A stretch of DNA of 64,000 nucleotides from Rebecca billardiae RCC1528 (taxonomy: Eukaryota; Protista; Haptophyta). The stretch's first letter is position 1. Every line of letters begins with the position of its first letter. The stretch is taken from assembly GCA_965240325.2 (NCBI GenBank), contig OZ251227.1:620001-684000 (forward strand), given 5' to 3'. The translations under genes were made by a program, and so were the position numbers. The notes beneath the pieces are model-generated. The model ran no database searches. It was not told where the DNA came from and saw nothing but the letters and a program-made list of their open reading frames with translations. This document shows positions 34,129 to 64,000 of this stretch, in pieces.

Positions 34129-34523
34129 CTAGCACCTGGAGATGGCGGCGGCCGCCGCCGCGCCCGTGGCGTGCGACGACTGCGCGCCAGGAGTGACGAT
34201 GTTGCTGCCATTCGCCGGCGCCCCCGCCGCGCCCGGCGGCGCCGATGAAATGGTCCTGGACGAGGGCGGCGCAGTCGAGGAATCGCAGTACGGCGCGTAC
34301 GGCGGCGGTAGCGCGCTGCCTGCCGCCTGCAGCGTCACGTCGTCCAGCCGCGCGGCCGGGCCCGCGCACGCGCGTGCGGCAGCGAACGGGTCCCCCACTG
34401 CAGACGCGTCCGTGGCGGCGGCCGGCTGCTCGCTCGCGTCGCCGCAGCCCGCCGCTTGCGCGGACAGTCGGTGTGGCCGTGCAAAGGGGTTGTCGATGCC
34501 GCCTCCAGGCGCTGCTGCTGCAG

Positions 34524-34554
<31 letters not shown>

Positions 34555-35378: not shown

Positions 35379-35412
<34 letters not shown>

Positions 35413-36663: not shown

Positions 36664-36770
36664 CGATGGCGCCGTCTGGATGCACTCCACCAGCTCAGCC
36701 TGTGCTCCAGACGCGCAGGCCGCACTGGCAAGGTACCTGGCCTCCCGGTCCGGACTGCGCCGCCATCGTA

Positions 36771-39264: not shown

Positions 39265-39404
39265 CGCCGAGGGCGCGCTTGGCTGCGGTGAGCGCCTGAG
39301 CGGCCAACGTTCACTGCGCAGCAAACCGATTGATGCCACTGCCAGCCGTGCAACTTGCAAGTGAGCCATCTGGCTTTTGCCACGGCGGCCCAGGACTCGT
39401 CACG

Positions 39405-43780: not shown

Positions 43781-45985
43781 TCAGTCGTCCAGCGCGCGCT
43801 CGCCCGCGTCAGCCGCGGCGCGCAGCGCGTGCGCGCCGCCGGGCAGCCCGAGGTCGAGCACGTGCGTGTGGCCCGCGCGCGCGCTCGGCGCGTGCGACAC
43901 GGTCACGCACGCAATCCCGCGCCGCTGCAGCTCGGCCCAGAGCCACGCGTCGAAGCCGGCGGCGGTGGAGGCGGTGGGCTCGTCGAGCAGGAGGAAGTCG
44001 GGCAGGCCGAGCAGCGCGCGCGCGAGCGCGAGGCGCTGCGTCTCGCCGCCCGAGAGCCCGGCGCACGCGCCGGGCACGTCGAGCGCGCCGTCGGCGCCGC
44101 CGCCGCCGGCCGCGGGCGCGCGCGCCTCCGCGGCCGCGAGCAGGGGGCCCAGCCCGGCCTCGCGCAGCGCGGCGCGCAGCTCGCCCGCGCTGGGTGGCGC
44201 CGGCGCGCCGCCCGAGCTGGAGGCGGCGGCGCCGACGCGCGGGTACGTGAGCGCCTGGCGCAGCGAGTGCGACGGGTCCACGTACGGCCGCTGCGGCACG
44301 TACGCCACCGACTGCGCGCGCGGCATCAGCAGCTCGCCTGCGCGAGGCTCCCACCAGCCGCCGAGCGTGCGCAGCAGCGACGTCTTGCCGCACCCGTTCG
44401 GCCCGCGGACGAGGAGGCGGGTGCGCCGGTCGATGGCGAGGGTGAGCCCGCTGACGAGCGGCGGCACGCCGGGCGGGCCGACACACACGTCGCGCAGCTC
44501 GATGCGCTGCTCGCCCGCCGCGGCGCGCGCGCCCTCGCCACCGTCGGCGCCGAGCGCCGCGCGCGCCGTCCGCGTGCCCGCCGCCGCCTCGGTCGCGTCC
44601 AGCGCAGACTGCACGCGCGCGGCGAGGCCGGCGGCGGTGCGCGCGGCGCGGTGCGCGCCGACCAGGTCGCGCGCGCAGAGGCCGAGGTCGACGAGCAGGT
44701 GCAGCGACGAGAGGAAGTACTCCGTCGCGCCGCCCGCCGCGCCGCCGCCGCGCGCGCCGCCCACGCCCGCGCCCGCGCCCGCGCCGCCGCCGCCGTACAC
44801 GGCGGGTGTCATGGCGGTGAAGGCGGCGAGGATGCCGAGGTAGCGCAGGGTGTACGACTCGAGCGTGGCGGCGAGGAGCTGCTGCGCGTGCAGCGCGGAG
44901 GAGGCGCGCGCGGCGGAGGCCCAGCGCGCGCCCAGCGCGGCCGCCTCCGCGCGCGCGCCGCGCAGCGCGTGCACGCCCTCCGCGTGCTCGACGACGCGCG
45001 CGTGCGCGGCTGCGAGCTCGGCCGCGGCCGCCGCATGCCGCGCGCGCAGCGAAGCAAACGCCGGCGCGATCGAGCGCACCCAGCCGCCGGCGACGGCGTA
45101 GAAGGCGAAGGCGCCGACGAGGCGGCGCCCGCCCATCAGCGACGCGAGCGTCGCGGTGAGCATGCACGCCTCGATCCCCGGCTTGAGCACCCCCGACGCG
45201 AGCGCGGCCAGCTCATCGCAGAGCGCGTCCGAGTCTGCGCCCAGCGCGCGCGACAGGTCGGACGCGCGCACGGGCGCGGGCGGCGCGGCGGCGGGCGCGG
45301 CGGCGGGCGTGGGGCCGGCGGAGCGGTCGGCCTCGGCATCGGCGTCGCCCTCCGCCTCGCCCTCGCCCTCGCCCTCGCCGCGCTGCTGCGCGCGCGCCGC
45401 GGCGGCGAGCAGCGCGCCGCTCGCGAGCGCCGCGCGCCAGCGCGCCTCGAGCCGCGCGCGCAGCGAGGCGGCGAGCCGCGCGCACGCGTACTGCGACGCG
45501 GCGCCGAGGAAGGCGGTGGGCAGCGTCCAGATTGCAAAGTCGATCTGCCGCTCGAAGAGCGCGTCCCAGTCGCGCGCCGACAGCAGCGCGCCCAGCACGC
45601 CGATCTCCGCCGAGACGTGCGTCGCCGCCCAGCGCCGCAGCGCGAGCGCCGCGCCGAGCAGCGCCGCGTCGGCGACGGGCGCCGAGCGCCACGCGGGCAC
45701 GAGCGCGCGGAGCACGACGCGCGTGGGCGACGGCTTCGCCACCGCGCGCGCGCTCGGCGTGCGCGCCGGCGCCGCCGGCTGCGCAGCTGGCGCCGGCTTG
45801 CCGGCGGCGGCGGCCGCCGCCGCCGCCGCCGCAGCGCGGCGCGCGCGCCGGCGCGCGAGCGTGCTCTGCAGGGTGAAGCTCGCCGCCGCGAAAGCCCATA
45901 CGGCGAGCACGGCCCGCCCGCGCCCCGAGCGCACCCACGCCGTCGCGAGGTGCTGCGCGAAGCTGCTGCCACTCGCGCTGGCCAT
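43781..45985 (-). CDS. ABC transporter subfamily D (peroxisomal-type half transporter)
   Basis: TMD with EAA-like HARVVEHAEGVHALRGARAE. Walker A GPNGCGKT, Q-loop YVPQRPY, signature LSGGETQRLALAR, Walker B LLLDEPTAS, H-loop TVSH. Confidence 0.92.
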   Translation of the reverse strand: MASASGSSFAQHLATAWVRSGRGRAVLAVWAFAAASFTLQSTLARRRARRAAAAAAAAAAAGKPAPAAQPAAPARTPSARAVAKPSPTRVVLRALVPAWRSAPVADAALLGAALALRRWAATHVSAEIGVLGALLSARDWDALFERQIDFAIWTLPTAFLGAASQYACARLAASLRARLEARWRAALASGALLAAAARAQQRGEGEGEGEAEGDADAEADRSAGPTPAAAPAAAPPAPVRASDLSRALGADSDALCDELAALASGVLKPGIEACMLTATLASLMGGRRLVGAFAFYAVAGGWVRSIAPAFASLRARHAAAAAELAAAHARVVEHAEGVHALRGARAEAAALGARWASAARASSALHAQQLLAATLESYTLRYLGILAAFTAMTPAVYGGGGAGAGAGVGGARGGGAAGGATEYFLSSLHLLVDLGLCARDLVGAHRAARTAAGLAARVQSALDATEAAAGTRTARAALGADGGEGARAAAGEQRIELRDVCVGPPGVPPLVSGLTLAIDRRTRLLVRGPNGCGKTSLLRTLGGWWEPRAGELLMPRAQSVAYVPQRPYVDPSHSLRQALTYPRVGAAASSSGGAPAPPSAGELRAALREAGLGPLLAAAEARAPAAGGGGADGALDVPGACAGLSGGETQRLALARALLGLPDFLLLDEPTASTAAGFDAWLWAELQRRGIACVTVSHAPSARAGHTHVLDLGLPGGAHALRAAADAGERALDD

Positions 45986-46176
45986 TGGTGCTGATGACGC
46001 GGCTGATGAGAGAGGCTCCGGCCCGAGCGCGCAGCACGTGGCCGCAACTCGGTGGCGACTGGGCGGTTCGTCAGCAGCCTTTGCTTTGCAAGTTTTGCGC
46101 GCCCTTTTCCGAATTTCCTCAGCTCTTCTTTTTCTCCGTCGCCCGCTCCAGACGTCGCTGCGCACTCGCGCCCGCC

Positions 46177-49100
46177 ATGCGCTGGCAGCGCGCCGCCATC
46201 GCCGGCGCGTCGCGCGTCGCGCTCGCGCTGCTGCTGCTGGCGCCCGCCGCGCGCGCGTTCGACGCGTACAAGTTCAAGAAGTGCGCCGACAACGCCTTCT
46301 GCCGCCGCCACCGCGCGCGCGCCGACGCGCCCGCCGACTCGTACGCGGCGGACGCGTCGACGCTCGCCGTCGAGTCGGACGAGCTGCGCGTGATCGTCGC
46401 GTCGTCCGAGCACCGCGTGCCGCTCGAGCTGCGGCTCACGGCGGCGGGCGACGCGCTGACGGCACGCGTCCGCCTCAAGGAGCTCGAGCCGCTCCACCCG
46501 CGCTTCGAGGTCCCGCACGTGCTCGTCGACGGCGCGGCCGCGCCCGCGCCGCTGCGCGTGCTCGCGCGCGACGCCGCGGGCGTGACGGTCGCGCTGGGCG
46601 CGGAGGGCGCGGGCGGCGGCGAGGTGCGGCTGGAGTTCTCGCCGCTCCGCCTCCACTTCTCCGCGCCCGCCGCCGGCGCGCCCGCCGCCGCGCCCCTCGT
46701 GCGCCTCGCCACGCTGAACGCGCGCGGGCTGCTCGAGTACGAGCACTACCGGCAGAGGCCGGCCGCGGCGGCGGGCGGGGAGGCGGGCGCGGCGGCGGGC
46801 GAGGGGGAGGCGGCGGCGGGCGAGGGGCCCGAGCAGCCGGAGGCCGAGCCCGCCGAGCCGCCCGTCCCCGCGCCCCCGGACTCCACCGGACTGTGGGAGG
46901 AGGAGTTTCAGTCGCACCGCGACACCAAGCCCAAGGGCCCCGCCTCGATCGGCCTCGACTTCTCGCTGCATGGCTTCGAGCACGTGTACGGGCTGCCCGA
47001 GCACGCGACGGCGCTCAGCCTCAAGGACACGCGGTGCGCGCCGCCGCGCACCGCGCCGCCCCTCGCTCGATGCGCGCGCGCGCGCTCACGCGCCGCGCCG
47101 CGCCGATCGCGCGCGGCCCCGCTGCCGCGCTGCGCAGCGGCGAGGGCGCGTACCCCGAGCCGTACCGGCTGTTCAACCTCGACGTGTTCGAGTACGACCT
47201 GGACTCGCCGTTCGCGCTGTACGGCTCCGTCCCGCTCCTCCTCGCGCACGCGCCCGACCGCGCCGTGGGCGTGCTCTGGCTGAACGCGGCCGAGATGTAC
47301 GTGGATGTGGCGCGCGAGCGGGGCGGGGGCGGGGGCGGGGGCGGGCTGTTTGGCGGCGGGGGGAAGGGGGGCGGCGCGTCGGCGGTGCACACGCACTGGA
47401 TGGCCGAGTCGGGCGTGCTCGACGCCTTCGTGCTCCTCGGCCCGACGCCGCGCGCGCTCGCCCGCCAGCACACGCGGCTGGTGGGCACGCCGTTCCTGCC
47501 GCCGCTCTTTGCACTCGGCTACCACCAGTGCCGCTGGAACTACAACGACGAGGCGGACGTGCGCGCGGTGGACGCGGCGTTCGAGGCGCACGACTTCCCG
47601 TACGACGTGCTCTGGCTCGACATCGAGCACACCGACGGCAAGCGCTACTTCACGTGGGACGAGCGCAAGTTCCCGCGCCCCGCCGCGCTGCAGGAGGCGC
47701 TGGGCGCGCGCGGCCACCGCACGGTGGTGATCATCGACCCGCACATCAAGCGGGACGAGGGCTACGAGGTGCACGCGCAGGCGACGAGCCGGGGGCTGTA
47801 CGTGCGCACGCACGCCAACGAGACCTTCGACGGCTGGTGCTGGCCCGGCTCCTCCTCGTACCTCGACTTCCTGCAGCCGGACGTGCGCGCGTTCTGGGCT
47901 GAGCGGCTGCAGCTGCGGCAGTACGCGGGCAGCACGCGCCACCTGCACGTGTGGAACGACATGAACGAGCCGAGCGTGTTCAACGGGCCGGAGGTGACGA
48001 TGCAGAAGGACTGCCTGCACGCGAACGGCGGCGTGGAGCACCGCGACGTGCACAACCTGTACGGCCACCTCCAGGCGATGGCCACGCGGCAGGGGCTGCT
48101 CGAGCGCGAGATGGACGGCCCCGCGGGCGCGCAGCGCAAGCGGCCGTTTGTGCTCACGCGCGCCTTCTTCGCGGGCACGCAGCGGCTGGCGGCGGTGTGG
48201 ACGGGCGACAACATGGCCAAGTGGGAGCACCTCGCCGCGGCCACGCCGATGCTGCTCACGCTCGGGCTCGGCGGCATCACCTTCTGCGGCGCGGACGTGG
48301 GCGGTGCGCGCGCGCCCGCGCGCGCCCTCTTTGCGCGCGCGCTCCACCCCTCGACCCGTCTGCCCGCACCACCCCTCGCCCTCCCCGCCTCCCGCCGCGC
48401 AGGCTTCTTCTACAACCCGGACACCGAGCTCCTCGAGCGCTGGTACCAGGCGGGCGCGTACTACCCCTTCTTCCGCGCGCACGCGCACATCGAGACCAAG
48501 CGGCGCGAGCCTTGGCTCTTTGGCGAGCAGACGCTGGCGCGCGCGCGGGAGGCGGTGCGCGAGCGGTACCGGCTGCTGCCGTACCTGTACACGCTGTTCG
48601 CCGCGGCGCACGCGGACGGCGCGCCGCCGATGCGCCCGCTCCACTTCGAGTTCCCGACCGACGAGCCCACGTTTGCGCAGGAGGACGCCTTCATGCTCGG
48701 GCCAGCGCTGCTCGTGCGGCCGGTCGCGCAGCCAGGGGTGAGCGCAGTCGAGCTGCGGCTGCCGGGCGCGGCGGCGCGCGCGCACGGCGGCGGCGAGCCG
48801 GCGGCGCGGTGGTACGACGCGCACACGTCGGCGTACGCCGGCGACGGCGGCGCGCGCGCCTCGCTCGCCGCGCCGCCCGAGCGCATCCCCGTCCTCCAGC
48901 GCGGCGGCACCATCGTGCCGCGCCGCGAGCGCGCGCGCCGCGCGTCCAACTCGATGGCCTTTGACCCGTACACACTCGTCGTCGCGCCCGACGCGGCGGG
49001 CGGCGCGCGCGGCGAGCTGTACCTCGACGACGGCGAGAGCTACGCGCACGAGGAGGGCGCATTCGCGTGGCGGCAGCTCTCGTACGCGGGCGGCACGCTC

Positions 49101-49367
49101 GAGTGCGCGCAGAGCGCCTCGCGGCCGCGCGGCGCGGCGGGCGCGTGCGACGCGGTGCGCGGCGCGCGCTCGGCCGTCGAGCGCGTCGTGCTGCTCGACG
49201 TGGCCGCGCCGCCCGCGCGCGTGCGGCTGGTGGGCGCGGGCGGCGCCGAGCGCGAGCTCTCGTTCCGGCACGAGCCGGACGCGCGCGTGCTCGTCGTGCG
49301 CAAGCCCGACGTGCCGGTGTGCGACGACTGGTCGATCGTCCTCGAGCCGGCGGCGGCGACGCGCTGA
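46177..49367 (+). CDS. GANAB: Glucosidase II alpha subunit (GH31). Exons 46177-47033, 47138-48303, 48403-49367
   Basis: Signal peptide, then FKKCADNAFCRR, WEEEFQSHRDTKPKGP, PYRLFNLDVFEY, LGYHQCRWNY, catalytic WNDMNEPSVF, WTGDN, GADVG|GFF and FFRAHAHIETKRREPW. Confidence 0.96.
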
Positions 49368-49781: not shown

Positions 49782-51257
49782 TTACGACGAGATGACTCCC
49801 GCCTCGCACAGCATCAGCTGCTGAGGCACGTCTACGCCCTCCTCCGGATTGAGTGCGCTGCGGCCGTCACCAAGGGCGGCGGACAGGTGGCCCCACACGT
49901 ACACTTGCCTGTTCGACGTCGTGGCGCAAGAATTGCGATACCCCATGAACACGCCGACCACAAATTCGCCGCCAAGTGCCTCCACGCGTATGGGTACCGT
50001 CAGCCCGCCGGCCTCGTCGCCGTGGCCGAGCAAATCGTACCCGCCGCACGTGTGCATACCACCCTCCGCGTCTAGCAGCGCGGTGGCGTAAGAACCGGCG
50101 GAGGCGCGCACGGTGCGCACGCCCGCAAGAGCCTCGATGCGCCTCGGCACGTTCTGGCGCACTCGGTCGCCGTGCCCAAGCTGCCCCTCGTCACCCCTTC
50201 CGAACGAGTGCGCACAGCCCGCCTCGTCCACTACCACGGAGTGGGACATCCCTGCGCTCACATGGACGGCGCGCACAGCAGCGAGCGCCTCGATGCGCTT
50301 GGGCGTGAGCTGGTGGGCGTTGTCACCACGACCGAGTTCACCACTGCGTCCGTACCCAAACGAGTACACGGCACCCGACGTGCATAGCGCCAGACTGTGC
50401 GCGCCCCCAGCGGAGATGCCGGCGATGCGCGCGTGCGCGAGGCCCTCGACCAGCGTGGGCACGAGCTGCCTCCGATCGACAGCGTAGCCGAGGCGCCCAA
50501 ATCCGTTATGACCCCAGCTGTGCACGCGCCCCGTGGCAGTGAGGGCGAGACAATGTACGTTGCGACTGGAGATGCACACGACGTGCTCGTCGCGCAGCTC
50601 GTCGATGCGCGTGGGGGTGGGCACCTCCTCCACGTCAGTGCCCAGCCCCAGCTGGCCCGAAGCGTTCCTACCGCACGCGTACACGGCGCCAGCGTCGCTC
50701 AGCGCCAGCAGGTGGTGCGAACCGGCGGCGACCGCGGTGATACGCGCGTCGCCAAGAGCGGCCACGCGGCGCGGCTTGAGTTCGCCAGGCGCCTCCTCGC
50801 TCTCGCCGTGCCCGAGCGCGGCGAAGGAGGCAGACCGCCTCTCGCGCTCCTCATCAGCCTCCTCCTCTTCCTCGTCCTCGAACAGCACTCGCTCACCACA
50901 CGTGTACAGCGCTCCCGAGGCACCGACGAGCGCGCTCATCCGTTGCTGCATGCAATCGTCAGACACGGCCGCGACAAGTGCATGTCGCTGCGCCCCGCGC
51001 CAAACGCGCCCCACCTCGAGCAGCAACCGCGTTGCCTTTGGACCCGTGTCCACGTGCTTGGGCAGAAGATGGCCAAACCGGGCGCGCAGAACACTCTCGA
51101 CCAGCGAGCGCGAGGATGGCGCGCCGCGGAAGAGGCGCGACGTGGCGTTCAGCGAGGCCAAGTCCTCCACGTCCTCGACGAAGCCCACGATGCGCTCGAG
51201 GAGCTCGGCATCCAAGGCCGCCAGCCACACTGCGGGCGCACATCCGCGCACGCTCAT
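49782..51257 (-). CDS. F-box-like + RCC1-repeat protein
   Basis: N-terminal LAALDAELLERIVGFVEDVEDLASLNATSRLF (F-box-like). About 6-7 RCC1 repeats (AAGSHHLLAL...VYACGRNASGQLG; SAGGAHSLAL...YSFGYGRSGELG; SAGMSHSVVV...SFGRGDEGQLG). Confidence 0.85.
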   Translation of the reverse strand: MSVRGCAPAVWLAALDAELLERIVGFVEDVEDLASLNATSRLFRGAPSSRSLVESVLRARFGHLLPKHVDTGPKATRLLLEVGRVWRGAQRHALVAAVSDDCMQQRMSALVGASGALYTCGERVLFEDEEEEEADEERERRSASFAALGHGESEEAPGELKPRRVAALGDARITAVAAGSHHLLALSDAGAVYACGRNASGQLGLGTDVEEVPTPTRIDELRDEHVVCISSRNVHCLALTATGRVHSWGHNGFGRLGYAVDRRQLVPTLVEGLAHARIAGISAGGAHSLALCTSGAVYSFGYGRSGELGRGDNAHQLTPKRIEALAAVRAVHVSAGMSHSVVVDEAGCAHSFGRGDEGQLGHGDRVRQNVPRRIEALAGVRTVRASAGSYATALLDAEGGMHTCGGYDLLGHGDEAGGLTVPIRVEALGGEFVVGVFMGYRNSCATTSNRQVYVWGHLSAALGDGRSALNPEEGVDVPQQLMLCEAGVISS

Positions 51258-51347: not shown

Positions 51348-53498
51348 ATGAGGGCCTCGCAAGCGGATGACAGCGCGAAGGATGCGCGGTGGTTCGAGGC
51401 GCGCGCCGAGGAGGGCAGCGACGACGGCGGCGGCAGCAGCGAAGGGAGCGGCGGCGGCGAGGCTGGCCGCGCGCGCGCGTGCGGCGCGTGCTTCGCGTTT
51501 GCCAGCGCGCAGCCGTCGCCGCGCGACGAGGGGTCGGCGCGGCGGTGGGGAGCGGTCGCGCGGGTGACGCCGATGCGTCGCATCTCGACGGCTCTCGGCC
51601 GGGCGCTCCCGTCCATGTCCCACGTGCTCGCCGCCTGGCGCGGCTCGCGCCACTCGCGCGCGGCCGGCGCGGGCTCCTTCCCGTCGCCGTTTGCGGACGG
51701 CGCCGACCCGCAGCACCCCGACCGCTCGTTTGCGTCGTACGTGATCCGGCTGCACGGGCTCGAGCCGGACTCGACGCGCCGCTCGAACGGCGCGTGGCGC
51801 GCGTGGTTCGCCGCCGCCGCGTGCATGCACGTGCTCGCGTTCGTCGCGGACGTGGCCTCCGACCTGCGGTACGACGCGCGCGCGGCGCACTCCGCGTGGG
51901 TCGAGGAGCTGACGCCGCAGCCGTGGGAGGCGCTCGGCGCGCCGCGCGCGGCGCTGGCGCGGCTGCACATCCCGGTGAACGCGCTGCACTCGCTCGGCCT
52001 CCTCTGCTACCGCCTCGGCCCCCTCGCCAGCTTCTTCACGCTGCGCGCGCTCGGCGCGGCCGGGCGGCCGCTCCGGCAGGCGTCCAGGTCGTGGAAGCGA
52101 GAGCTGGGCGTGCTGCTGGGCCTGCGCGCGCCCGGCGGCGGCGGCGGCGGGGTGGGCGGCTCGGGGGAGGCGGCCGGGCTCGGCGACGACTCGCGCACCG
52201 CGCCGCCGCGCCCGCTGATGCACAGCACGCGGCTGCGCATCCGCACCTCCGAGCACCGCGTGTACGCGGCCGTGCTGCTGCTGTGGCTCAGCTACGCGGC
52301 AGCCGTCCAGCTGCGGCCGAGGAGCGAGCGCGTGCGCGGCGTGGCCTCGCGCGCCGTCGCGTTCGTGAACACGAGCATCCTGAGCGGCGTGAGCACGCTC
52401 TGCTGCGCCGCCTTCTACGAGCGCCTCCGCTTCGACACGGCGCTGCTCCACGCGGCCGCGCGCGACGCGGAGGCGTGCGGCGGCGCGCTCGGCGGCGCGC
52501 TCGGCGGCGCGCGCGGCGCGGGCGCAGGCGCGGGCGCGGGCGCGGAGGGCGAGGCCGAGGGCGACACCGCGGCGCGGCTGATCCGCGCGCACCTGCAGCT
52601 CGACGCGCGGCTCACGCGCACCGGGCGCACGTGGCAGCGCCCGGTGATCACCGTCGTCGCCATCGACAGCCTGACCTGCCTGCTGCTGATGCTGCAGCAA
52701 ATGGCCCTGCTCAGCGCGGCCGAGAGCGGGCGCGGGCCGTACGCGCTGTGCGAGCGCGCGCTGGCGGAGGCGGGCGCGGCGGCGGGCGGCGGGGAGGGCG
52801 TGGCGGGGTGCTGGGTGCGCGCGGACCTCGAGTTCGCCGTGGCGTGCGTCTGCCTCGCCCTGCTGCGCCAGGGGCTGCTGGTGCGGGGCGTGGCGCTGCT
52901 GCACCGCGCGCTGTGCACGCACAGAGACGCGCTCGGCAGGCTCTCGCTCGAGAGCGCGCTCGGGCCCGCCACCGCGGAGGAGGAGGTGGACGCCGACGCG
53001 GAGGCGGGGGTGGAGGAGGCGAGGATGGAGCTGCTCGCGATGGCGGCGCAGCTCGGCGCGCGCTGCCCGCCGTCGCTCGCTCACACCGCCGCCCGCTCGC
53101 GCGCGCCCGGCCATGCGCGCGCGGCGACGACGCTCGTGCTGCCGCAGCTGCCGCAGCTGCGCTCGGCGCCGAGCGGCTGCGGCGCGGCCGTGGGCGGCGG
53201 CGGGCCGCGCGACGCGACTCCAGCCGCCGCCGGCCCGTCCGCGCCCTCGGCGCCGTGCGCGCGGCCGCGCGAGGAGCGCGAGGGGCGCGAGGGGGCTCGG
53301 CACTGGGACGACCTGCGCGAGCTGCTCGCACTGCTGCCGCTGCGCGTCACCTTCTACGGGAGAGACCTGGTGCTGGTCTACCGCACGGTGGCGGCGCAGG
53401 CCGTGTCCGTCACGCTGCTGCTGCTGCGACTGTGCTGGGTCAACGCCGTCAGCCGCGGCAGCGGGCACCACGCGTCAGCGTCAGCGGGCACTACGTAA
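51348..53498 (+). CDS. Multi-pass membrane protein, candidate gustatory-receptor-like / DUF3537 7TM ion channel
   Basis: About 7 hydrophobic segments, no signal peptide. LIRAHLQLDARLTRTGRTWQ lies before TM5, a long loop follows TM6, and the C-terminus has a split-helix-like LPLRVTFYGRDLVLVYRTVAAQAVSVTLLLLRL. Confidence 0.6.
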   Translation: MRASQADDSAKDARWFEARAEEGSDDGGGSSEGSGGGEAGRARACGACFAFASAQPSPRDEGSARRWGAVARVTPMRRISTALGRALPSMSHVLAAWRGSRHSRAAGAGSFPSPFADGADPQHPDRSFASYVIRLHGLEPDSTRRSNGAWRAWFAAAACMHVLAFVADVASDLRYDARAAHSAWVEELTPQPWEALGAPRAALARLHIPVNALHSLGLLCYRLGPLASFFTLRALGAAGRPLRQASRSWKRELGVLLGLRAPGGGGGGVGGSGEAAGLGDDSRTAPPRPLMHSTRLRIRTSEHRVYAAVLLLWLSYAAAVQLRPRSERVRGVASRAVAFVNTSILSGVSTLCCAAFYERLRFDTALLHAAARDAEACGGALGGALGGARGAGAGAGAGAEGEAEGDTAARLIRAHLQLDARLTRTGRTWQRPVITVVAIDSLTCLLLMLQQMALLSAAESGRGPYALCERALAEAGAAAGGGEGVAGCWVRADLEFAVACVCLALLRQGLLVRGVALLHRALCTHRDALGRLSLESALGPATAEEEVDADAEAGVEEARMELLAMAAQLGARCPPSLAHTAARSRAPGHARAATTLVLPQLPQLRSAPSGCGAAVGGGGPRDATPAAAGPSAPSAPCARPREEREGREGARHWDDLRELLALLPLRVTFYGRDLVLVYRTVAAQAVSVTLLLLRLCWVNAVSRGSGHHASASAGTT

Positions 53499-53649: not shown

Positions 53650-56600
53650 CTACTTGCTGCGCACGCAGCCCTTGACGAGCATCCCGCCTTGCCCGGCGAG
53701 TGGCTCGACGACGATGAGCTTGAGCACGAGGCACGCTGCCCAGACGATCATCACCTGCTCGCGCCAGAGGGCGGGGTCGCGCAGCCGGCTGCCCAGCCGC
53801 TCGCCCGCGAGCGAGAGGCCGAGCAGCGCGGTGATGAGCACGGCGGCGGCAAGGAAGTGCGCCGCCCACACCACGCGCGTCTTCCACCGCTTCGGCTTGT
53901 TGGCCCACCAGTTGGCATTCTTGAGCTGCGCCGCCGAGAGGCGCACGCGCTTGCGCACGCGCGAGCCAGTCAGCGGACTCATCGGATCGGCCACCGACTC
54001 GAACGCGGCGACGGCCGCGCGGATGGCGAGGTCGGGAGCGGCGATGACGTGCGCCTGCGTCAGCGCCGAGCCAGTCTCAGACAGCGGCCAGTACGCCACC
54101 TTGACCATCTTGGCGTGCTCGCGCTTGCCGTCGCTGCCGTCGCCGTCGCCGCGCAGCGTCGTGCCGAACGCCGCCTCGGCCACCGCCCTCGGGACGGGCG
54201 CGGCGCGGTACACCGTCTCCACCTGCACGAAGCGCACGTCCGGCAGCTCGCCCTCGCCAAGCTCGATGCGCACCTCGCCGAGGTCCTCGTCAGCCCCGCG
54301 GGTCACCTGCGTGATCAGCTCCTGGATGATCGACGGCCGGTTGCGCATGGTCAACCCGCGCTCCGCGCGCGCCTCGCGCGCAGCCGCGCCTGCCACGAAG
54401 AAGCCGACCATGTGCTCGTCGTGCATCGGGATGGAGACGAGCGCCTCCTCGGGCAGCTCGAGGCGCATCGTGCCGGGCGCCACCGAGCCGCGCCGCGGCG
54501 CCGAGTTGCCGCCGGCGCGCTCAGGCCGCACGCGCTCGCTCGGCGTGCCGGCGGTGACGTTTGCGAGGCTGAAGCTGCGCGTGAGCGAGTGCTTGAGGCC
54601 ACCGGGGCCGTCGCGGCCCACGCGCGACATGCCCGTGGGGCGGACGTACAGAAGGCGCTGCCGGCCGCCCTGCGCGCGCGCGCTGTTGGCCTCGCCGCTT
54701 GCCGAGCTGTCCCTCGAGGGCGCGCGGTGCACGCCGCCGGCGGTGGCGCCTCCCGCCGCCTGCGGCACGTTGTGCGCGTACGTGCGCGTCGCACCGGTGC
54801 CGCCCTCGGCGGCATCCGCGCCCACCGGCTGGCGGAGCGCGCGCTGGCGCTCCTCCTCCGTGAGCGTCTCACCCCGGCGCGCGCGCAGCAGCCCGCTCCG
54901 CTTCGCCGCCCACACGCTCAGCTGCTTGAAGGCGAACGTGGCCGGGAACGAGACTCCCAGCCCGGCGAGCGCGCCAAGCCCCAGCCAGAGCAGCCGCGCG
55001 TCGACCGCCTGGCCGAGCACGAGCGAGATGGCGAGGATCTCGAGAAGGGTGGTGTTGAATTGCGCCATCAGCCGCTGCTTCGACGTCATCGACTCGCCCG
55101 GCAGGCGCATGAGCCACGAGGTGACCATCGAACGCCGCAGCACGTTGGTGAGCACGCGCCACGCGAGCGAAGAGCGCGCGAGCTGCATCCACCCGGGCAC
55201 GCGCGGCTCAACGTCCACGCGCCGGTCGAGCACGCGTGCGACCAAGTGCAGCGAGCCATAGAGCGCGATCAGGACGCTCACGATGACCACGCCCCTGCGT
55301 GGCGGGGAGGGGCGGCGTGGAGGGCGGCGTGTGTGAGCTCAGCTCGAGTGTGCGAGCACCGCACACGCGCCGCAACGCGCCGCCGCAGACGGCGCGGCCA
55401 GCCGCGCGCACGAGCGCGCGCGCGCTCGCGCACGCGCACCAGTAGTTCTCGCCAAGCCGCCTGATCAGAGAGCGGGTGGTGGCGCCCCGCCGCTCTGTGT
55501 CGGAGGACTGGGTGCCGGCCGAGGACGACGTCACCACGACGGGCGCCGACGGGGGCGGGCTGGCAATCACCGGGGCGATGGACTCCTCGAGCGCGCCCGC
55601 CAGCTCGGCTTGCGACGCCTCCGCATCGACCGAGCCGTCCGCCACGCCTACAACTAGCTCGGTGCCGCGCCCCTGCGTGACTTGCGCGAGATCGTTGAGA
55701 GCACCGGCGGTGGTGCCCGCGTCGCGAAGGCTCGTCACCACCTGCCGCGGCAAGACCGCGTGCAGAGCGCCGAGGCAGGGGGCGGCGGGCTGTGAGAGCG
55801 CGCTCGAGCGCGCACGCGCCCGCGCCCGTGCCGCGCGCATGGAGCGCGGCGCCGGCGCAGCGGCGCACCGATTCAGTCGCGGCGGCCACGCCGTCGAGCG
55901 CGGCCTTCATCACGGCGATCGCGGCGGCCGTGCGGTTGGTCGCGTTGCCCGTGCGGCTGGCCGGGTCCACAGCCGCGTCCACGACTGTCTGCAGCGTGCT
56001 CAGCTCCTGCGCGCCGCGGGGAGCGCGTGGGCGAGTGAGGTCGGTGGCGCACGCGCGTGAGCGCGCGGCGGACGCGCGTGCGCACGCACGCGCGCACAGC
56101 CGCAGGCGGGCGCGGCGGGGCGCCGGTCGGGCAGACGGCACTCACCGAGAGCACTGATGGAGGCGCGGGGCTCGGCGCCGGCGCGGGCGCGGTGTCGCTG
56201 CTGTTGCTGACGTCGGGCGTCGGCGGCGGGTCTGGTATCTGCTTGCCGCGCTCGGTGAGGACCTTTGCGAGTGAGCGCATCACCGCCTGCCCGGTCGCCT
56301 CATCGTCCACCGCGCCCGCGCCCGCGCTCGAGAGCGCGCGGCCGATCTCGAGGGCCTGCATCACCACAGTCGTCGCCTGGATGAGCACGCCCACCGTCCG
56401 GATCGACAGCTCGCGTTGCTCCACGCTCGCGTCCGGCTCGTCCGACTCTGTAAGCGCAAGGAAGGGATCGTACTGGTACACAGAGCCGCTGCCGACCAGC
56501 CCGCCCAGCCCGAGCGAGACGAGGAGGTCGCGCTCGGCCGTGGGGCTCGGAGGCGCGTTGGCGAGCAGCGTGGTGAGCGGCGTGAGCACCGTGCCCACGC

Positions 56601-59600
56601 CGCGCGTCTCGAAGGCCACGGTCGGTGCGATGTCTGTGGACATGTCCACGCAGCCGGGTCCCGGCTCCATCTTGACGCGCACCGCGCGCCGCTGCGCGCT
56701 TGTGAGCCCCGCCACCTGCGCCTCGGAGAAGCCGTAGTAGCCGAACGCGGCGGAGGACTTGGTCGTCGGCTCCGACGCGCCCCGCCGCCCATCCCCGTCC
56801 AGGTCGAGGAACACGGTGCAGTTTCGGAAGTAGCCGTCAAAGGCGTGGCCGCACACTGGGGCCACGCCAGTGTCGCATCTGCGCGCGCCAGCGGCACCCT
56901 CGCACGCCGCGCCGGTGCAGCCGGCCGGAGGCGAGCTCGGGGGCGGCGGCGACGGCGGCGGGCTCGGTGGCGGCGACGGAGGTGGGCTGGGCGGTGGCGG
57001 CGGCGGCGGACTCGGCGGCGGGCTGGGCGGTGGGCTCGGCGGCGGCAAAGGTGGCGGGCTCGGCGGGGGCGAGGGCGGCGGCGAGGGCGGCGGCGAGGGC
57101 GGTGGGCTCGGTGGCGGGCTCGGCGGTGGCGATGGTGGCGGGCTCGGCGGCGGCGACGGGGGCGGGCTCGGCGGCGGGCTCGGCGGCGGGCTCGGCGGCG
57201 GGCTCGGCGGCGACGATGGCGGCGGCGAAGGCGGTGGACTCGGCGGCGGGCTTGGCGGCGGGCTCGGCGGCGGGCTCGGCGGCGGGCTCGGCGGCGGCGA
57301 GGGCGGCGGAGAGGGCGGTGGCGAGGGCGGTGGCGAGGGCGGTGGGCTCGGCGGCGGAGATGGCGGTGGACTCGGCGGTGGCGACGGTGGCGGGCTCGGC
57401 GGTGGCGACGGTGGCGGGCTCGGCGGCGGGCTCGGTGGTGGCGACGGCGGTGGCGACGGCGGCGGGCTCGGCGGCGGGCTTGGTGGTGGCGATGGCGGCG
57501 GCGAAGGCGGTGGACTCGGTGGCGGCGACGGCGGTGGGCTCGGTGGCGGGCTGGGCGGCGGGCTTGGTGGTGGCGAGGGCGGCGGCGAGGGCGGCGGCGA
57601 GGGCGGCGGCGAGGGCGGCGGGCTCGGTGGCGGGCTCGGCGGTGGCGATGGTGGCGGGCTCGGTGGCGGCGAGGGCGGTGGACTCGGCGGTGGCGACGGT
57701 GGCGGGCTCGGCGGTGGCGATGGTGGCGGGCTCGGCGGCGGGCTCGGCGGTGGCGACGGCGGTGGCGAGGGCGGCGGGCTCGGCGGCGGGCTTGGCGGCG
57801 GGCTCGGCGGCGGGCTCGGAGGAGGGCTTGGCGGTGGCGATGGTGGCGGCGAGGGCGGTGGCGACGGCGGTGGCGAGGGCGGCGGGCTCGGTGGCGGAGA
57901 GGGCGGTGGACTCGGCGGTGGCGACGGCGGCGGGCTCGGCGGTGGCGATGGTGGCGGGCTCGGCGGCGGGCTCGGCGGTGGCGACGGCGGTGGCGAGGGC
58001 GGCGGGCTCGGCGGCGGGCTTGGCGGCGGGCTCGGCGGCGGGCTCGGCGGCGGGCTCGGAGGAGGGCTTGGCGGTGGCGATGGTGGCGGCGAGGGCGGTG
58101 GCGACGGCGGTGGCGAGGGCGGCGGGCTCGGTGGCGGAGAGGGCGGTGGACTCGGCGGTGGCGACGGCGGCGGGCTCGGCGGTGGCGACGGCGGCGGGCT
58201 CGGCGGCGGGCTCGGCGGTGGCGACGGCGGTGGCGAGGGCGGCGGGCTCGGCGGCGGGCTTGGTGGTGGCGAGGGCGGCGGGCTCGGCGGCGGCGAAGGC
58301 GGCGGGCTCGGCGGCGGGCTTGGCGGCGGGCTCGGAGGAGGGCTTGGCGGTGGCGATGGTGGCGGCGAGGGCGGTGGCGACGGCGGCGGCGAAGGCGGCG
58401 GGCTAGGCGGCGGAGATGGCGGTGGACTCGGCGGTGGTGACGGCGGCGGGCTCGGCGGTGGCGACGGTGGCGGGCTCGGCGGCGGGCTTGGTGGTGGCGA
58501 GGGCGGCGGCGAAGGCGGTGGACTCGGTGGCGGCGACGGCGGCGGGCTCGGCGGCGGGCTGGGCGGCGGGCTTGGCGGTGGCGAGGGCGGCGGCGAGGGC
58601 GGTGGCGAGGGCGGCGGCGAGGGCGGCGGGCTCGGCGGCGGAGATGGCGGTGGACTCGGCGGTGGCGACGGTGGCGGGCTCGGCGGTGGCGACGGTGGCG
58701 GGCTCGGCGGCGGGCTCGGCGGTGGCGACGGCGGTGGCGACGGTGGCGGGCTCGGCGGCGGGCGTGGCGGTGGCGAGGGCGGCGGGCTCGGCGGCGGGCT
58801 CGGCGGCGGGCTCGGCGGCGGGCTCGGCGGTGGCGACGGTGGCGGCGAGGGCGGCGGCGAAGGCGGTGGGCTGGGCGGCGGCGACGGCGGTGGGCTCGGC
58901 GGCGGTGACGGAGGTGGGCTGGGCGGTGGCGGCGGCGGTGGGCTCGGCGGCGGGCTGGGCGGTGGGCTCGGCGGCGGCGAAGGTGGTGGCGAGGGAGGTG
59001 GGCTGGGCGGCGGCGACGGCGGTGGGCTAGGCGGCGGCGGCGGCGGCGGGCTCGGCGGCGGGCTCGGCGGCGGACTCGGCGGTGGCGACGGTGGCGGCGA
59101 GGGCGGCGGCGACGGCGGTGGGCTGGGCGGCGGCGACGGCGGTGGGCTCGGCGGCGGCGACGGAGGTGGGCTGGGCGGTGGCGGCGGCGGTGGGCTCGGC
59201 GGCGGGCTGGGCGGTGGGCTCGGCGGCGGCGAAGGTGGTGGCGACGGAGGTGGGCTGGGCGGCGGCGGCGGCGGCGGGCTCGGCGGTGGGCTCGGCGGCG
59301 GGCTCGGCGGTGGCGACGGTGGCGGTGAGGGCGGCGGCGGGGGCGGCGGGCTGGGCGGCGGCGACGGCGGTGGGCTCGGCGGCGGTGACGGCGGTGGGCT
59401 GGGAGGAGGCGGCGGAGGCGGGCTCGGCGGCGGGCTCGGCGGCGGGCTCGGCGGCGGGCTCGGCGGTGGCGACGGTGGTGGCGATGGCGGTGGCGGCGGG
59501 CTGGGCGGTGGGCTCGGCGGCGGCGAAGGTGGTGGCGACGGAGGTGGGCTGGGCGGAGGCGGGCTCGGCGGTGGGCTCGGCGGCGGGCTCGGCGGTGGCG

Positions 59601-62600
59601 ACGGTGGCGGTGAGGGCGGCGGTGGCGAGGGCGGCGGTGAGGGTGGTGGTGGCGGTGGCGGCGAGGGCGGTGGCGGCGAGGGAGGTGGCGAGGGCGGCGG
59701 CGAGGGCGGCGGCGGTGGTGGCGACGAGGGCGGTGGCGGCGAGGGCGGCGGCGAGGGCGGCGGCGGTGGTGGCGGCGAGGGTGGTGGCGGCGAGGGAGGT
59801 GGCGAGGGCGGCGGCGAGGGCGGCGGCGAGGGCGGCGGCGGTGGTGGCGACGAGGGCGGTGGCGGCGAGGGCGGCGGCGAGGGCGGCGGCGGTGGTGGCG
59901 GCGAGGGTGGTGGCGGCGAGGGAGGTGGCGAGGGTGGCGGCGAAGGCGGCGGTGGCGAAGGCGGTGGCGAGGGCGGCGGCGAGGGCGGCGGCGGTGGTGG
60001 CGACGAGGGCGGCGGCGGCGAGGGCGGTGGCGAGGGCGGTGGCGGCGAGGGCGGCGGCGAGGGCGGCGGCGAGGGCGGCGGCGGTGGTGGCGGCAAGGGC
60101 GGCGGCGGCGAGGGCGGCGGTGGTGGCGGCGAGGGCGGCGGGGGCGAGGGCGGCGGTGGTGGCGGCGAGGGCGGTGGTGGCGGCTGATAAGGCGGCGGCG
60201 ACGAGGGCGGTGGCGGCGAGGGCGGCGGCGGTGGCGGCGAGGGCGGCGGTGGCGAGGGCGGCGGTGGTGGCGGCGAGGGCGGTGGCGGCGGTGAGGGCGG
60301 AGAAGGTGGTGGCGGCGAGGGCGGCGGCGGCGAGGGCGGCGGCGAGGGCGGTGGCGAGGGCGGCGGCGAGGGCGGCGGCGGCGAAGGTGGCGGCGAGGGC
60401 GGTGGCGAAGGTGGTGGCGACGGAGGTGGGCTGGGCGGCGGCGGCGGCGGCGGGCTCGGCGGTGGGCTCGGCGGCGGGCTCGGCGGTGGCGACGGTGGCG
60501 GTGAGGGCGGCGGCGGGGGCGGCGGCGGCGAGGGCGGTGGCGAGGGAGGTGGCGAGGGCGGCGGCGAGGGCGGCGGCGGTGGTGGCGGTGAAGGCGGCGG
60601 CGGCGAGGGCGGCGGCGAGGGCGGCGGTGGCGACGGTGGCGGTGAGGGCGGCGGCGGGGGCGGCGGGCTGGGCGGCGGCGACGGCGGTGGGCTCGGCGGC
60701 GGTGACGGCGGTGGGCTGGGAGGAGGCGGTGGAGGCGGGCTCGGCGGTGGGCTCGGCGGCGGGCTCGGCGGTGGCGACGGTGGCGGTGAGGGCGGCGGTG
60801 GCGAGGGCGGCGGTGAGGGTGGTGGTGGCGGTGGCGGCGAGGGCGGTGGCGGCGAGGGAGGTGGCGAGGGCGGCGGCGAGGGCGGCGGCGGTGGTGGCGA
60901 CGAGGGCGGTGGCGGCGAGGGCGGCGGCGAGGGCGGCGGCGGTGGTGGCGGCGATGGTGGTGGCGGCGAGGGAGGTGGCGAGGGCGGCGGCGAGGGCGGC
61001 GGCGAGGGCGGCGGCGGTGGTGGCGACGAGGGCGGTGGCGGCGAGGGCGGCGGCGAGGGCGGCGGCGGTGGTGGCGGCGAGGGTGGTGGCGGCGAGGGAG
61101 GTGGCGAGGGTGGCGACGAAGGCGGCGGTGGCGAAGGCGGTGGCGAGGGCGGCGGCGAGGGCGGCGGCGGTGGTGGCGACGAGGGCGGCGGCGGCGAGGG
61201 CGGTGGCGAGGGCGGTGGCGGCGAGGGCGGCGGCGAGGGCGGCGGCGAGGGCGGCGGCGGTGGTGGCGGCAAGGGCGGCGGCGGCGAGGGCGGCGGTGGT
61301 GGCGGCGAGGGCGGCGGGGGCGAGGGCGGCGGTGGTGGCGGCGAGGGCGGTGGTGGCGGCTGATAAGGCGGCGGCGACGAGGGCGGTGGCGGCGAGGGCG
61401 GCGGCGGTGGCGGCGAGGGCGGCGGTGGCGAGGGCGGCGGTGGTGGCGGCGAGGGCGGTGGCGGCGGTGAGGGCGGAGAAGGTGGTGGCGGCGAGGGCGG
61501 CGGCGGCGAGGGCGGCGGCGAGGGCGGTGGCGAGGGCGGCGGCGAGGGCGGCGGCGGCGAAGGTGGCGGCGAGGGCGGTGGCGAAGGTGGTGGCGACGGA
61601 GGTGGGCTGGGCGGCGGCGGCGGCGGCGGGCTCGGCGGTGGGCTCGGCGGCGGGCTCGGCGGTGGCGACGGTGGCGGTGAGGGCGGCGGCGGGGGCGGCG
61701 GCGGCGAGGGCGGTGGCGAGGGAGGTGGCGAGGGCGGCGGCGAGGGCGGCGGCGGTGGTGGCGGTGAAGGCGGCGGCGGCGAGGGCGGCGGCGAGGGCGG
61801 CGGTGGCGAGGGCGGCGGTGAGGGTGGTGGTGGCGGTGGCGGCGAGGGCGGTGGCGGCGAGGGAGGTGGCGAGGGTGGCGGCGAGGGCGGCGGCGGTGGT
61901 GGCGACGAGGGCGGTGGTGGCGAGGGCGGCGGCGAGGGCGGCGGCGGTGGTGGCGGCGAGGGTGGTGGCGGCGAGGGAGGTGGCGAGGGCGGCGGCGAGG
62001 GCGGCGGCGAGGGCGGCGGCGGTGGTGGCGACGACGGCGGTGGCGGCGAGGGCGGCGGCGAGGGCGGCGGCGGTGGTGGCGGCGAGGGTGGTGGCGGCGA
62101 GGGAGGTGGCGAGGGTGGCGGCGAAGGCGGCGGTGGCGAAGGCGGTGGCAAGGGCGGCGGCGAGGGCGGCGGCGAGGGCGGCGGCGGTGGTGGCGACGAG
62201 GGAGGTGGTGGCGATGGCGGTGGCGATGGCGGCGGGGGTGGTGGCGGCGAAGGCGGCGGTGGCGAAGGCGGTGGCGAGGGCGGCGGCGAGGGCGGCGGCG
62301 GTGGTGGCGACGAGGGCGGCGGCGGCGAGGGCGGTGGCGAGGGCGGCGGCGGCGAGGGCGGCGGCGAGGGCGGCGGCGAGGGCGGCGGCGGTGGCGGCGG
62401 CGAGGGCGGTGGCGGCGAGGGCGGTGGTGGTGGCGACGAGGGCGGCGGGGGCGAGGGCGGCGGTGGTGGTGGCGAGGGCGGTGGCGGCGGCGGCGAGGGC
62501 GGCGGTGGTGGCGGCGAGGGCGGCGGGGGCGAGGGCGGCGGTGGTGGCGGCGAGGGCGGTGGCGGCGGCTGATAAGGCGGCGGCGACGAGGGCGGTGGCG

Positions 62601-64000
62601 GCGAGGGCGGCGGCGGTGGCGACGAGGGCGGCGGGGGCGAGGGCGGCGGTGGTGGTGGCGAGGGCGGTGGCGGCGGTGAGGGCGGAGAAGGTGGTGGCGG
62701 CGAGGGCGGCGGCGGCGAGGGCGGCGGCGAGGGCGGTGGCGAGGGCGGCGGCGAGGGCGGCGGCGGCGAAGGTGGCGGCGAGGGCGGCGGCGAAGGTGGC
62801 GGCGAGGGCGGCGGCGGTGGTGGCGGCGAGGGCGGCGGCGAGGGCGGCGGCGGCGAGGGCGGCGGCGAGGGCGGCGGCGGTGGTGGCGACGAGGGCGGCG
62901 GCGGCGAGGGGGGTGGCGAGGGCGGCGGCGAGGGCGGCGGCGAGGGCGGCGGCGGTGGTGGCGGTGAGGGCGGTGGGGGCGAGGGCGGCGGCGAGGGTGG
63001 CGGTGGTGGTGGTGACGAGGGCGGCGGCGGCGAGGGAGGTGGCGAGGGTGGCGGCGAGGGCGGCGGCGGTGGCGGCGGCGAGGGCGGCGGCGGCGATGGA
63101 GGTGGCGAGGGCGGCGGCGAGGGCGGTGGCGAGGGCGGCGGCGGTGGCGGCGGCGGCGAGGGTGGCGGCGAGGGCGGCGGCGAGGGCGGTGGCGGCGAGG
63201 GAGGTGGCGAGGGCGGCGGCGAGGGCGGCGGCGGTGATGGTGGCGGCGAGGGCGGCGGCGAGGGCGGCGGTGAGGGCGGTGGTGGCGAGGGCGGCGGCGA
63301 GGGCGGCGGCGAGGGCGGCGGCGGTGGTGGTGGCGAGGGCGGTGGCGGCGAGGGAGGTGGCGAGGGTGGCGGCGAGGGCGGCGGCGGAGGTGGCGACGAC
63401 GGCGGTGGCGGGCTGGGCGGCGGGCTTGGTGGCGACGGCGGCGGCGACGGCGGCGGCGGCGGCGACGGCGGCGGTGGGGGTTGCGGTGACGGCGGGAGCA
63501 CGCCTTGGCATACGCTGAAGAGGCGCGGGACGGAAAATCCGCAAAGTTCATCCCGCCACTCGCCATCGCGCATAGCCACGCAGTCCTGGCCGGGCTCGTT
63601 GCTGGGCGCCCCGCCGTTGTTCGGCTCAGGGGGATACGAGCCTTGCCACCAGGGCTGAAAGCCTCCCAGCGGTGAGGCGTCGCTCACCCAGAAGAACGAC
63701 CCCGCAGAAGCGCTGTCCGACAAGCCAACCCAGAGAAAGGGGAATTGGCTCGGGCCGTCGCCATCCGCGGGTTGGCCGAAAGCTGCGTCCAGCACGGCGC
63801 TCGTCTCGGCGTCGGGCACCTTGGCGAGGCTGCCGTTGCGCACCAGCCCCTGGCAGAACGCGAGGCCCGCGTCCCAGTCGAGTGCAGCCGTGGCTGCACT
63901 CTTGATGTAGCAATGGTCTTGGTAGTATATGACTTGGTGCAAAGCTTCGTCGAGCTCCCAGCACTCGGGGAGTTGCCCCAGGGCCCCTAGCGCGCTCAGC
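53650..64000 (-). CDS. Polycystin-1-like receptor: C-type lectin + ~2,200-aa Ser-Pro stalk + Ca-binding-like module + ~5 TM (5' end beyond the window). Exons >64000-56146, 56006-55869, 55741-55440, 55294-53650
   Basis: CTL motifs CY...WDAGLAFC..LA...LWVGLSD...W...EPNN...DCVAMRDGEWRDELC...VC. The three GT..AG introns keep the frame. Membrane part ENYWGVVIVSVLIALYGSLHLVARVLD, RLPGESMTSKQRL, VSFPATFAF and WAACLVLKLIVVEPL echoes PKD1-family TM1-TM5. Confidence 0.75.
56933..63495 (-). repeat. ~6.5-kb coding repeat (SPPP/SPPPP)n, extensin/pherophorin-like
   Basis: Directly visible 12-18-bp degenerate units. YQPPPPP landmark at ~60185, 61361 and 62570. Confidence 0.95.

Follow-up and report, generated by a model that had tools for sequence, protein, structure and literature searches.

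A possible, extremely divergent relative of odorant- and gustatory-receptor channels encoded in the haptophyte Rebecca billardiae

The odorant receptors (ORs) of insects and their gustatory receptors (GRs), among them Orco, MhOr5, GR43a and GR9, are tetrameric ligand-gated cation channels assigned to the Pfam families 7tm_6 and 7tm_7, and a long open reading frame (ORF) of the haptophyte Rebecca billardiae RCC1528 raises the question of whether a remote relative of these channels is encoded in this marine alga. The ORF lies on the forward strand at positions 51348-53498 of a 64,000-nucleotide stretch of contig OZ251227.1 (positions 620,001 to 684,000; assembly GCA_965240325.2), the whole of which is called the window below. 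A preliminary description had proposed that its product is a divergent gustatory-receptor-like (GRL) protein, akin to the plant DUF3537 proteins. Our results tilt, to a slight degree, towards an extremely divergent, lineage-specific member, at the level of the superfamily, of the seven-transmembrane (7TM) ion channel (7TMIC) superfamily, a reading supported by a controlled language-model result, by the predicted topology and by the positional concordance of weak sequence matches.

The gene and the predicted layout of its product

The gene under study is the following:
51348..53498 (+): single-exon coding sequence of the candidate membrane protein, 716 amino acids plus stop (ORF list, translation, codon-position GC content)

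The frame opens with the ATG at 51348 and closes with the stop codon at 53496-53498, giving a product of 716 amino acids rich in Ala, Leu, Gly and Arg. The GC content of the window is 70-85% and long ORFs are present in all six frames. Over ~51580-53380 the GC content at third codon positions (GC3) of the candidate frame is 0.97-0.99, the GC content at first positions (GC1, 0.70-0.83) exceeds that at second positions (GC2, 0.54-0.69) as in all the Pfam-confirmed genes of the window, and the antisense frame sharing the third position of the candidate is interrupted by stops; on these three grounds the ORF is considered coding and not a chance product of high GC. GC3 climbs to 0.93 from ~51405, and the first ATG is therefore a reasonable start. 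No intron is needed, and the gene fits between a divergent RCC1 gene (start 51179, -) and a convergent ORF (end 53650, -). The interval 51348-53498 is hence a genuine single-exon gene of a very GC-rich alga, encoding a polytopic membrane protein.

Hydrophobic segments were taken from a Kyte-Doolittle scan, and orientation from a TopPred-like count of Lys plus Arg (positive-inside rule) over six alternative helix sets, a crude method. Transmembrane segments (TM) and other elements of the product are listed below with their basis, where S7a and S7b denote the two parts of a split seventh helix.

51723..51767 (+): possible N-terminal re-entrant "TM0" with G-h-x-P ending (RSFASYVIRLHGLEP), residues 126-140; weak, judged by eye against the TM0 region of GRLs and DUF3537 proteins in the literature
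51795..51857 (+): hydrophobic helix 1, residues 150-170; hydropathy peak 1.75, helix in AlphaFold (AF2) secondary structure
51984..52052 (+): weak hydrophobic helix 2, residues 213-235; hydropathy ~1.2, helix in AF2 secondary structure
52254..52313 (+): hydrophobic helix 3, residues 303-322; hydropathy 1.49
52353..52415 (+): hydrophobic helix 4, residues 336-356, with predicted helical extension to ~390; hydropathy 1.59, low-confidence AF2 secondary structure
52578..52637 (+): helix ahead of TM5 with His415 (HLQLDARLTRTGRTW); match to the algal GRL pattern H..L...L...[SG][+].[FWY]
52638..52706 (+): hydrophobic helix 5, residues 431-453; hydropathy 1.89
52812..52883 (+): hydrophobic helix 6, residues 489-512, then HR/THR motifs at 519-526; hydropathy 1.93
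52884..53267 (+): long low-complexity Ala/Gly/Pro-rich cytosolic loop, residues 513-640; translation, loop lengths
53268..53330 (+): amphipathic S7a-like helix, residues 641-661; helix in both AF2 secondary structures
53337..53381 (+): candidate S7a/S7b beta-hairpin PLRVTFYG-RDLVLVY, residues 664-678; only strands in AF2 model 1, likeness to the GRL motif
53385..53450 (+): last hydrophobic helix (S7b-like), residues 680-701, then a tail of 15 amino acids; hydropathy 1.78

Among the six helix sets, the largest Lys plus Arg bias (21 vs 12) belonged to a seven-helix model with the N-terminus inside, for which helix 2 (residues 213-235) is required. In this model the outer loops measure 42, 13 and 35 amino acids, with the 15-residue tail also outside, while the inner regions measure 149 (N-terminus), 67, 74 and 167 amino acids, the longest loop being that between TM6 and TM7. 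The list of features that defines 7TMICs includes seven helices, an N-terminus in the cytosol and a C-terminus outside the cell, short loops on the outer face, long extensions of TM4-6, a split TM7 and an N-terminal re-entrant loop (Himmel et al., 2023, bioRxiv 10.1101/2023.08.30.555482). The candidate agrees with this list in having outer loops shorter than the inner ones, as well as in the orientation of its two termini, the latter according to the crude Lys plus Arg count. The best-fitting topology has seven helices joined by short outer and long inner loops, with the N-terminus on the inner side and the C-terminus on the outer.

Secondary structure was also read from the AlphaFold model obtained with the single sequence (model 1), whose mean predicted local distance difference test (pLDDT) is as low as 38.8. 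In this model helices continue after TM4 (to ~390), before TM5 (400-425) and after TM6 (to ~537), and a helix at 641-661 is followed by the only strands of the model, at 665-670 and 673-678, and then by a helix at 683-704. At this low pLDDT, the predicted layout resembles the extensions of TM4-6 and the split TM7 of the list above.

Most of what the preliminary description had stated about the product agrees with these data. The intronless ORF of ~716 amino acids was borne out by the translation and by the GC3 of 0.97-0.99, the two peptides quoted there were located at residues 411-434 and 652-695, and the product does contain both a long N-terminal region (149 amino acids) and, behind the sixth helix, a long loop rich in Ala, Gly and Pro (167 amino acids). 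The count of about seven hydrophobic helices holds for six strong segments, while the second helix is marginal (hydropathy ~1.2).

Likeness to 7TM ion channels and to green-algal GRL proteins

The candidate was submitted to an ESM-Atlas feature search, which returned its 30 nearest clusters. The first was a cnidarian "gustatory receptor" (score 0.95, 205/256 features in common), followed by an unnamed arthropod cluster and by an arthropod "odorant receptor". All the named hits (11 of the 30 clusters) belong to the GR/OR/DUF3537 group, and the eight Pfam-bearing clusters carry plant DUF3537 (five clusters) or else 7tm_7 or DUF267/Trehalose_recp/7tm_7, so that the clusters with a name or a Pfam domain belong to a single 7TMIC group and come from four widely different lineages. 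As a control we used the neighbouring orphan multi-pass ORF of 546 amino acids at 53653-55290 (-), which has the same composition; a single control is a small sample. Its "recognition" value (1943) was similar to that of the candidate, but its best hits reached only 0.78 and were unnamed ciliate clusters. Because the control behaves differently, the OR/GR/DUF3537 assignment is specific to the candidate and not a generic artefact of GC-rich orphan membrane proteins.

Motifs were compared by eye with the green-algal proteins CpriGRL1 and MpusGRL1, whose sequences are available, together with a trimmed superfamily alignment, in the supplement of Benton et al. (2020, PMC7746228). The candidate and the algal GRLs have in common G-h-x-P after an amphipathic N-terminal helix. 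Before TM5 the candidate reads H415-x2-L-x3-L-x3-G-R-x-W, its DUF3537 counterpart being EH..L...L...SHRF, and the same His is found in Orco, Gr64a and most GRLs (PMC7746228). At the start of TM6 the candidate has RADL, identical in the Micromonas GRL, with (T)HR after TM6; MAFFT pairs the THR of the candidate with the family-invariant HR, and VR..L.THR is the family pattern around TM6. Before the last helix the candidate has PLRVTFYG, where algae have PLGI[TS]IYG and plants GIT[LV]YG, followed by R-T-V (R-[ST]-h); in GR structures a beta-hairpin is found between S7a and S7b (PMC12635824). These motifs occur in the same order in the candidate and in the algal GRLs, and those near TM5, TM6 and the last helix stand where the Chloropicon, Micromonas and Arabidopsis proteins have theirs. 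Two of them had been pointed out in the preliminary description, namely the pre-TM5 helix with its His and the hThYG loop that leads to the last helix, and both stand where published GRL alignments have them. A regular expression for the pre-TM5 His helix was matched by 65 of 200,000 shuffles and one for the hairpin by 5 of 200,000, figures that are optimistic given that both expressions were relaxed after the candidate had been seen. With the window translated in six frames, each of the two has a single match, which is the candidate.

Reference genes were obtained by searching metagenome contigs (241 million records) for the algal hairpin peptide with a degenerate DNA pattern of 13 codons. 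The five hits were all genuine GRL genes, which makes the hairpin motif a very specific probe for green-algal DUF3537 genes. One is a Chloropicon-like gene (L001:2620-4629:-, DUF3537 E=2.7e-27) and the other four are Micromonas pusilla copies, represented here by exon 2 only (L004:431-1609:+, DUF3537 E=2e-25); as controls, the algal GRLs score 90-96 bits on Pfam DUF3537 (E=1e-25 to 1e-27). The DUF3537 profile used below (alignment A1) contains nine sequences, namely the algal genes, the Chloropicon clade and two Ipomoea DUF3537 proteins, which came from protein searches (P0001-P0010).

Two observations concern the Micromonas copies themselves. The Micromonas pusilla GRL gene is complete on contig L005 (MDSW01051974.1) at ~400-3400 (-), where a single intron separates RHRHVIST from VHDAYVG. 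The copy at L003:446-1882 (-), compared with those on L004 and L005, is shorter by ten residues of the S7a-like helix (IERDAVLGHF), which directly precede the conserved hairpin PLGISIYG; the gap may reflect either natural variation by deletion or an error of assembly.

When the candidate was compared with the nine-sequence profile, the scores were insignificant, as detailed in the next section, and the best hhalign and HMMER matches paired structurally equivalent elements. The best Viterbi hit of hhalign, of insignificant score, paired the S7a end and hairpin of the family with residues 654-671, while the maximum-accuracy (MAC) alignment, likewise insignificant, paired the family region from pre-TM5 through TM6 with residues 409-495; the sole HMMER domain, again of insignificant score, joined pre-TM5 and TM5 of the family to residues 410-457. 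With a position-specific scoring matrix (PSSM) of nine blocks, the best windows included b3 at the pre-TM5 His helix, b5 at 487 and b9 at 680. The TM0 block at residues 126-140 reached only 4 bits, and the best window of the protein for it is elsewhere. For five of the nine blocks (pre-TM5, TM5, TM6 start, hairpin and S7b) the best window lies no more than 8 residues from the position predicted from hydropathy-peak geometry, a concordance that local shuffling with the hydropathy layout preserved reaches in 0-2 of 3,000 trials at a tolerance of 8-10. Allowing for post hoc choices, we take this positional concordance as moderate support, at about p=0.001-0.01, for the 7TMIC reading.

Counter-evidence and rival explanations

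The results that follow weigh against a place for the candidate among the 7TMICs. A Pfam search that included DUF3537 (PF12056), 7tm_7 (PF08395) and 7tm_6 (PF02949) gave no match at E<=10 with the whole protein or with three sub-ranges, so that the comparison with the DUF3537 and 7tm_7 profiles which the preliminary description had put forward as a check turned out negative. Against two algal GRLs, BLASTP returned only non-collinear matches with E>=0.06. With the nine-sequence profile, hhalign gave E=0.38 and a probability of 0.16%, and its score of 17.1 was reached by 37 of 120 window-20 shuffles as well as by the reversed sequence; hmmsearch --max gave -2.9 bits, a value reached by 4% of window-20 shuffles; and the nine-block PSSM chain scored 40.4, as compared with 36 +/- 5.5 in shuffles, while the reversed sequence reached 43.8 and an unrelated ORF 42.5. 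In the positive controls seven of nine blocks (Ipomoea against the algal profile) and seven of eight (Micromonas against the rest) were correctly placed, and the key blocks score 20-45 bits in true distant members vs 5-8 in the candidate. Since the standard alignment statistics are all non-significant and the key blocks far below the positive controls, the candidate is not a DUF3537 family member; membership of DUF3537, 7tm_7 or 7tm_6 was rejected, Pfam giving no match and alignment scores lying within shuffle noise, and the candidate would at best be related to them at the level of the superfamily.

Structure prediction was no more favourable. The single-sequence AlphaFold model of residues 125-716 was unfolded, its pLDDT of 38.8 being accompanied by a predicted template modelling score (pTM) of 0.23, and Foldseek with this model (pLDDT 38.8) returned noise only. 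A second run, given an unsupervised MAFFT alignment to eight DUF3537 proteins, reached pLDDT 43.5 and pTM 0.30; with only eight rows and circular by design, it neither helps nor hurts much. In the resulting model 2 (pLDDT 43.5) residues 663-710 form one helix and the hairpin of model 1 is not reproduced.

The supporting evidence has weak points as well. The "recognition" value of the candidate in the language-model search (1867) lies below 2300, the level under which the tool calls a high score weak evidence. Helix 2 is weak (~1.2) while the other six are strong, and the putative outer loop 323-335 bears five Arg. The concordance test is a custom one, designed after the data had been seen, and at a tolerance of 4-6 the count of concordant blocks is two, with p 0.06-0.12. 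MAFFT aligned SYAAAVQL in TM3 of the candidate to SYMAAVFL in TM4 of the family, a non-equivalent helix, indicating that attractive short matches in helices rich in Ala, Leu and Val can be due to chance. The GR motif of TM7, (T/S)Y-hhhhh-(Q/K/E)(F/L/M), was not found in the C-terminal (outer) half of the last helix of the candidate; its spacing fits only Y678 and Q684, at the cytosolic start of that helix, where V and A occupy the T/S and F/L/M positions. The animal GR/GRL motif of TM7 cannot be recognised in the plant and green-algal members either (PMC7746228).

Searches for closer relatives gave a uniform outcome. No chain matched the candidate in a PDB sequence search, and no relatives were found by a word-index protein search, by phmmer run exhaustively over 1.84 billion cluster representatives or by a tblastn-confirmed metagenome scan with the candidate protein. 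As judged by these searches, the candidate protein is a sequence orphan.

The explanation that best survives beside 7TMIC membership is an unrelated, lineage-specific polytopic membrane protein, whether a transporter, a scaffold or other, which resembles 7TMICs by chance or convergence. We regard it as a serious contender, with a probability clearly short of one half: it would account for a protein lacking relatives in every sequence search, with all alignment statistics inside shuffle noise, key-block scores far under those of true distant members, a low language-model recognition value, no fold from AlphaFold even with a DUF3537 alignment, and by-eye matches that fall at non-equivalent positions as well. 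Against it stand the language-model hits that are named or Pfam-bearing, all of them 7TMICs from four lineages, with a top score of 0.95 vs 0.78 for the control, the positional concordance of five blocks, and the fit of topology and loop asymmetry to the 7TMIC list. The claim of a divergent GRL stood in part: the language-model group, the 7TM topology with the N-terminus inside and the motif positions speak in its favour, while neither a Pfam match nor a significant sequence score was obtained.

Within the superfamily, the candidate could belong to the PHTF-like 7TMICs (Class-B) instead of the GR/DUF3537-like ones (Class-A), as its first inner loop of 67 amino acids would allow. A very long TM2-TM3 loop characterises the Class-B proteins (bioRxiv 10.1101/2023.08.30.555482), whereas in the candidate the TM6-TM7 loop is the longest, a trait shared with DUF3537 proteins (Benton et al., 2020, PMC7746228), and no PHTF cluster was present among its 30 nearest language-model clusters; the class was rejected for these two reasons and we hold it very improbable. 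The least probable explanation is a chance open frame with no gene, for which one may invoke the long ORFs that all six frames of the window contain at 75-80% GC and the absence of the protein from the public protein collections searched, but which was rejected on GC3, given that GC3 of 0.97-0.99 with GC1>GC2 across 2 kb is the signature of the Pfam-confirmed genes of the window, that the frame is uninterrupted while the antisense frame with the shared third position is broken, and that the ORF fits exactly between two other genes.

Neighbouring genes and known systems

The other features of the window are listed below.
2033-4360 (+): weak GT47/exostosin-like hit (Pfam)
34132-36984 (-): subtilase (Pfam)
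37501-39399 (-): kinesin (Pfam)
43784-46273 (-): ABCD-type half transporter (Pfam)
46908-49364 (+): GH31 glucosidase (Pfam)
49785-51179 (-): RCC1-repeat gene, 465 amino acids (Pfam RCC1 E=2e-62), head-to-head with the candidate and ~170 bp apart
53653-55290 (-): convergent membrane ORF of 546 amino acids with 5-6 hydrophobic segments (ORF; language-model hits unnamed)

The GT47-like, subtilase, kinesin, ABCD and GH31 genes are ordinary eukaryotic genes with GC3 of 0.87-0.94. GC3 of the RCC1 gene is only ~0.78 vs 0.93-0.99 in the flanking genes, an unusual contrast of codon bias within one locus. On the reverse strand, one frame stays open over the 7,288 codons of 11112-32975, with GC3 0.96, and is a giant gene, and 53650-64000 (-) holds an ORF of 2,689 amino acids that combines an N-terminal C-type lectin domain (E=8e-8) with ~2,200 residues of (S)PPP repeat. 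The 546-amino-acid ORF, downstream of this lectin ORF, may represent one more exon of the lectin gene.

A polycystin-like receptor had been described tail-to-tail with the candidate, and the pair taken as a small sensory neighbourhood. Pfam found no PKD_channel, PLAT, REJ or GPS domain in 53653-55290(-), 55211-55840(-) or 55876-57501(-), the only hit being the C-type lectin of the 2,689-amino-acid ORF. The supposed polycystin is the convergent ORF of 546 amino acids, without a PKD-type Pfam domain and with unnamed language-model hits, and the surroundings consist of RCC1, GH31, ABCD transporter, kinesin, subtilase, GT47-like and lectin-domain genes. With no polycystin-type domain and with ordinary genes as neighbours, the sensory neighbourhood was rejected.

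If the candidate is a 7TMIC, its function can be sketched by pure analogy with the insect receptors: it may be a ligand-gated channel, with tetrameric assembly and a part in chemosensation conjectured in the same way. The cytosolic extensions of helices 4-6, together with the helix at 641-661 (the "anchor"), would hold four subunits together; a central cation pore would be lined by the last helix (680-701), and a pocket for the ligand would be made by the outer half of helices 1-6. We know of no 7TMIC outside insects with a known function, and an algal gene without introns lends itself readily to expression and electrophysiology. Tentatively, and with a likelihood somewhat under even, the gene may found or belong to a sequence-orphan, haptophyte-specific branch of 7TMICs, made of fast-evolving OR/GR-type channels, perhaps chemosensors, too diverged for profile methods. 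Were this true, a marine alga outside the green lineage would use such fast-evolving channels, perhaps as chemosensors; should fold prediction fail, the candidate would simply be an orphan membrane protein. A protein that is an orphan among 1.84 billion representatives, and yet is grouped by a language model with OR/GR/DUF3537, is a test case for the trust to be placed in feature-based homology calls. 7TMICs have already been reported in eukaryotes, bacteria and archaea, including algae (PMC7746228; bioRxiv 10.1101/2023.08.30.555482), therefore one more divergent member would extend the known picture without opening a new one.

Among known systems, the PHTF-like Class-B 7TMICs share with the candidate the proposed superfamily and core topology and the presence in diverse unicellular eukaryotes, and differ from it in the dominant loop, TM2-TM3 in Class-B and TM6-TM7 in the candidate. 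The green-algal GRLs (Chloropicon primus CpriGRL1 and Micromonas pusilla MpusGRL1) are closer in layout, being likewise proteins of unicellular algae with 650-720 amino acids, seven helices (predicted in the candidate) and long low-complexity cytosolic loops, of which the TM6-TM7 loop is the longest or nearly so in both. They also share the short motifs and their order, G-h-x-P ahead of TM1, a helix with His ahead of TM5, (T)HR behind TM6 and, before and at the last helix, P-L-x-h-T-h-Y-G and then R-[ST]-h. Their hosts are green algae and that of the candidate is a haptophyte; the algal proteins match Pfam DUF3537 at 1e-25 to 1e-27 with blocks of 20-45 bits, whereas the candidate has no hit and blocks of 5-8 bits, and it does not keep the invariant Gly of the hairpin, F-x-h-D-R after the hairpin, SHRFR or the C-V-x-F-R block of TM4. 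From insect ORs and GRs the candidate differs in having no sequence match to them, in lacking the TM7 motif and in being ~300 amino acids longer through its loops and N-terminus. It resembles them in the predicted 7TM topology with the N-terminus inside and the C-terminus outside, in the short outer loops, in the His helix before TM5 and in the predicted helix-hairpin-helix C-terminus, and the insect OR/GR proteins, with their animal GRL relatives, are its nearest language-model clusters.

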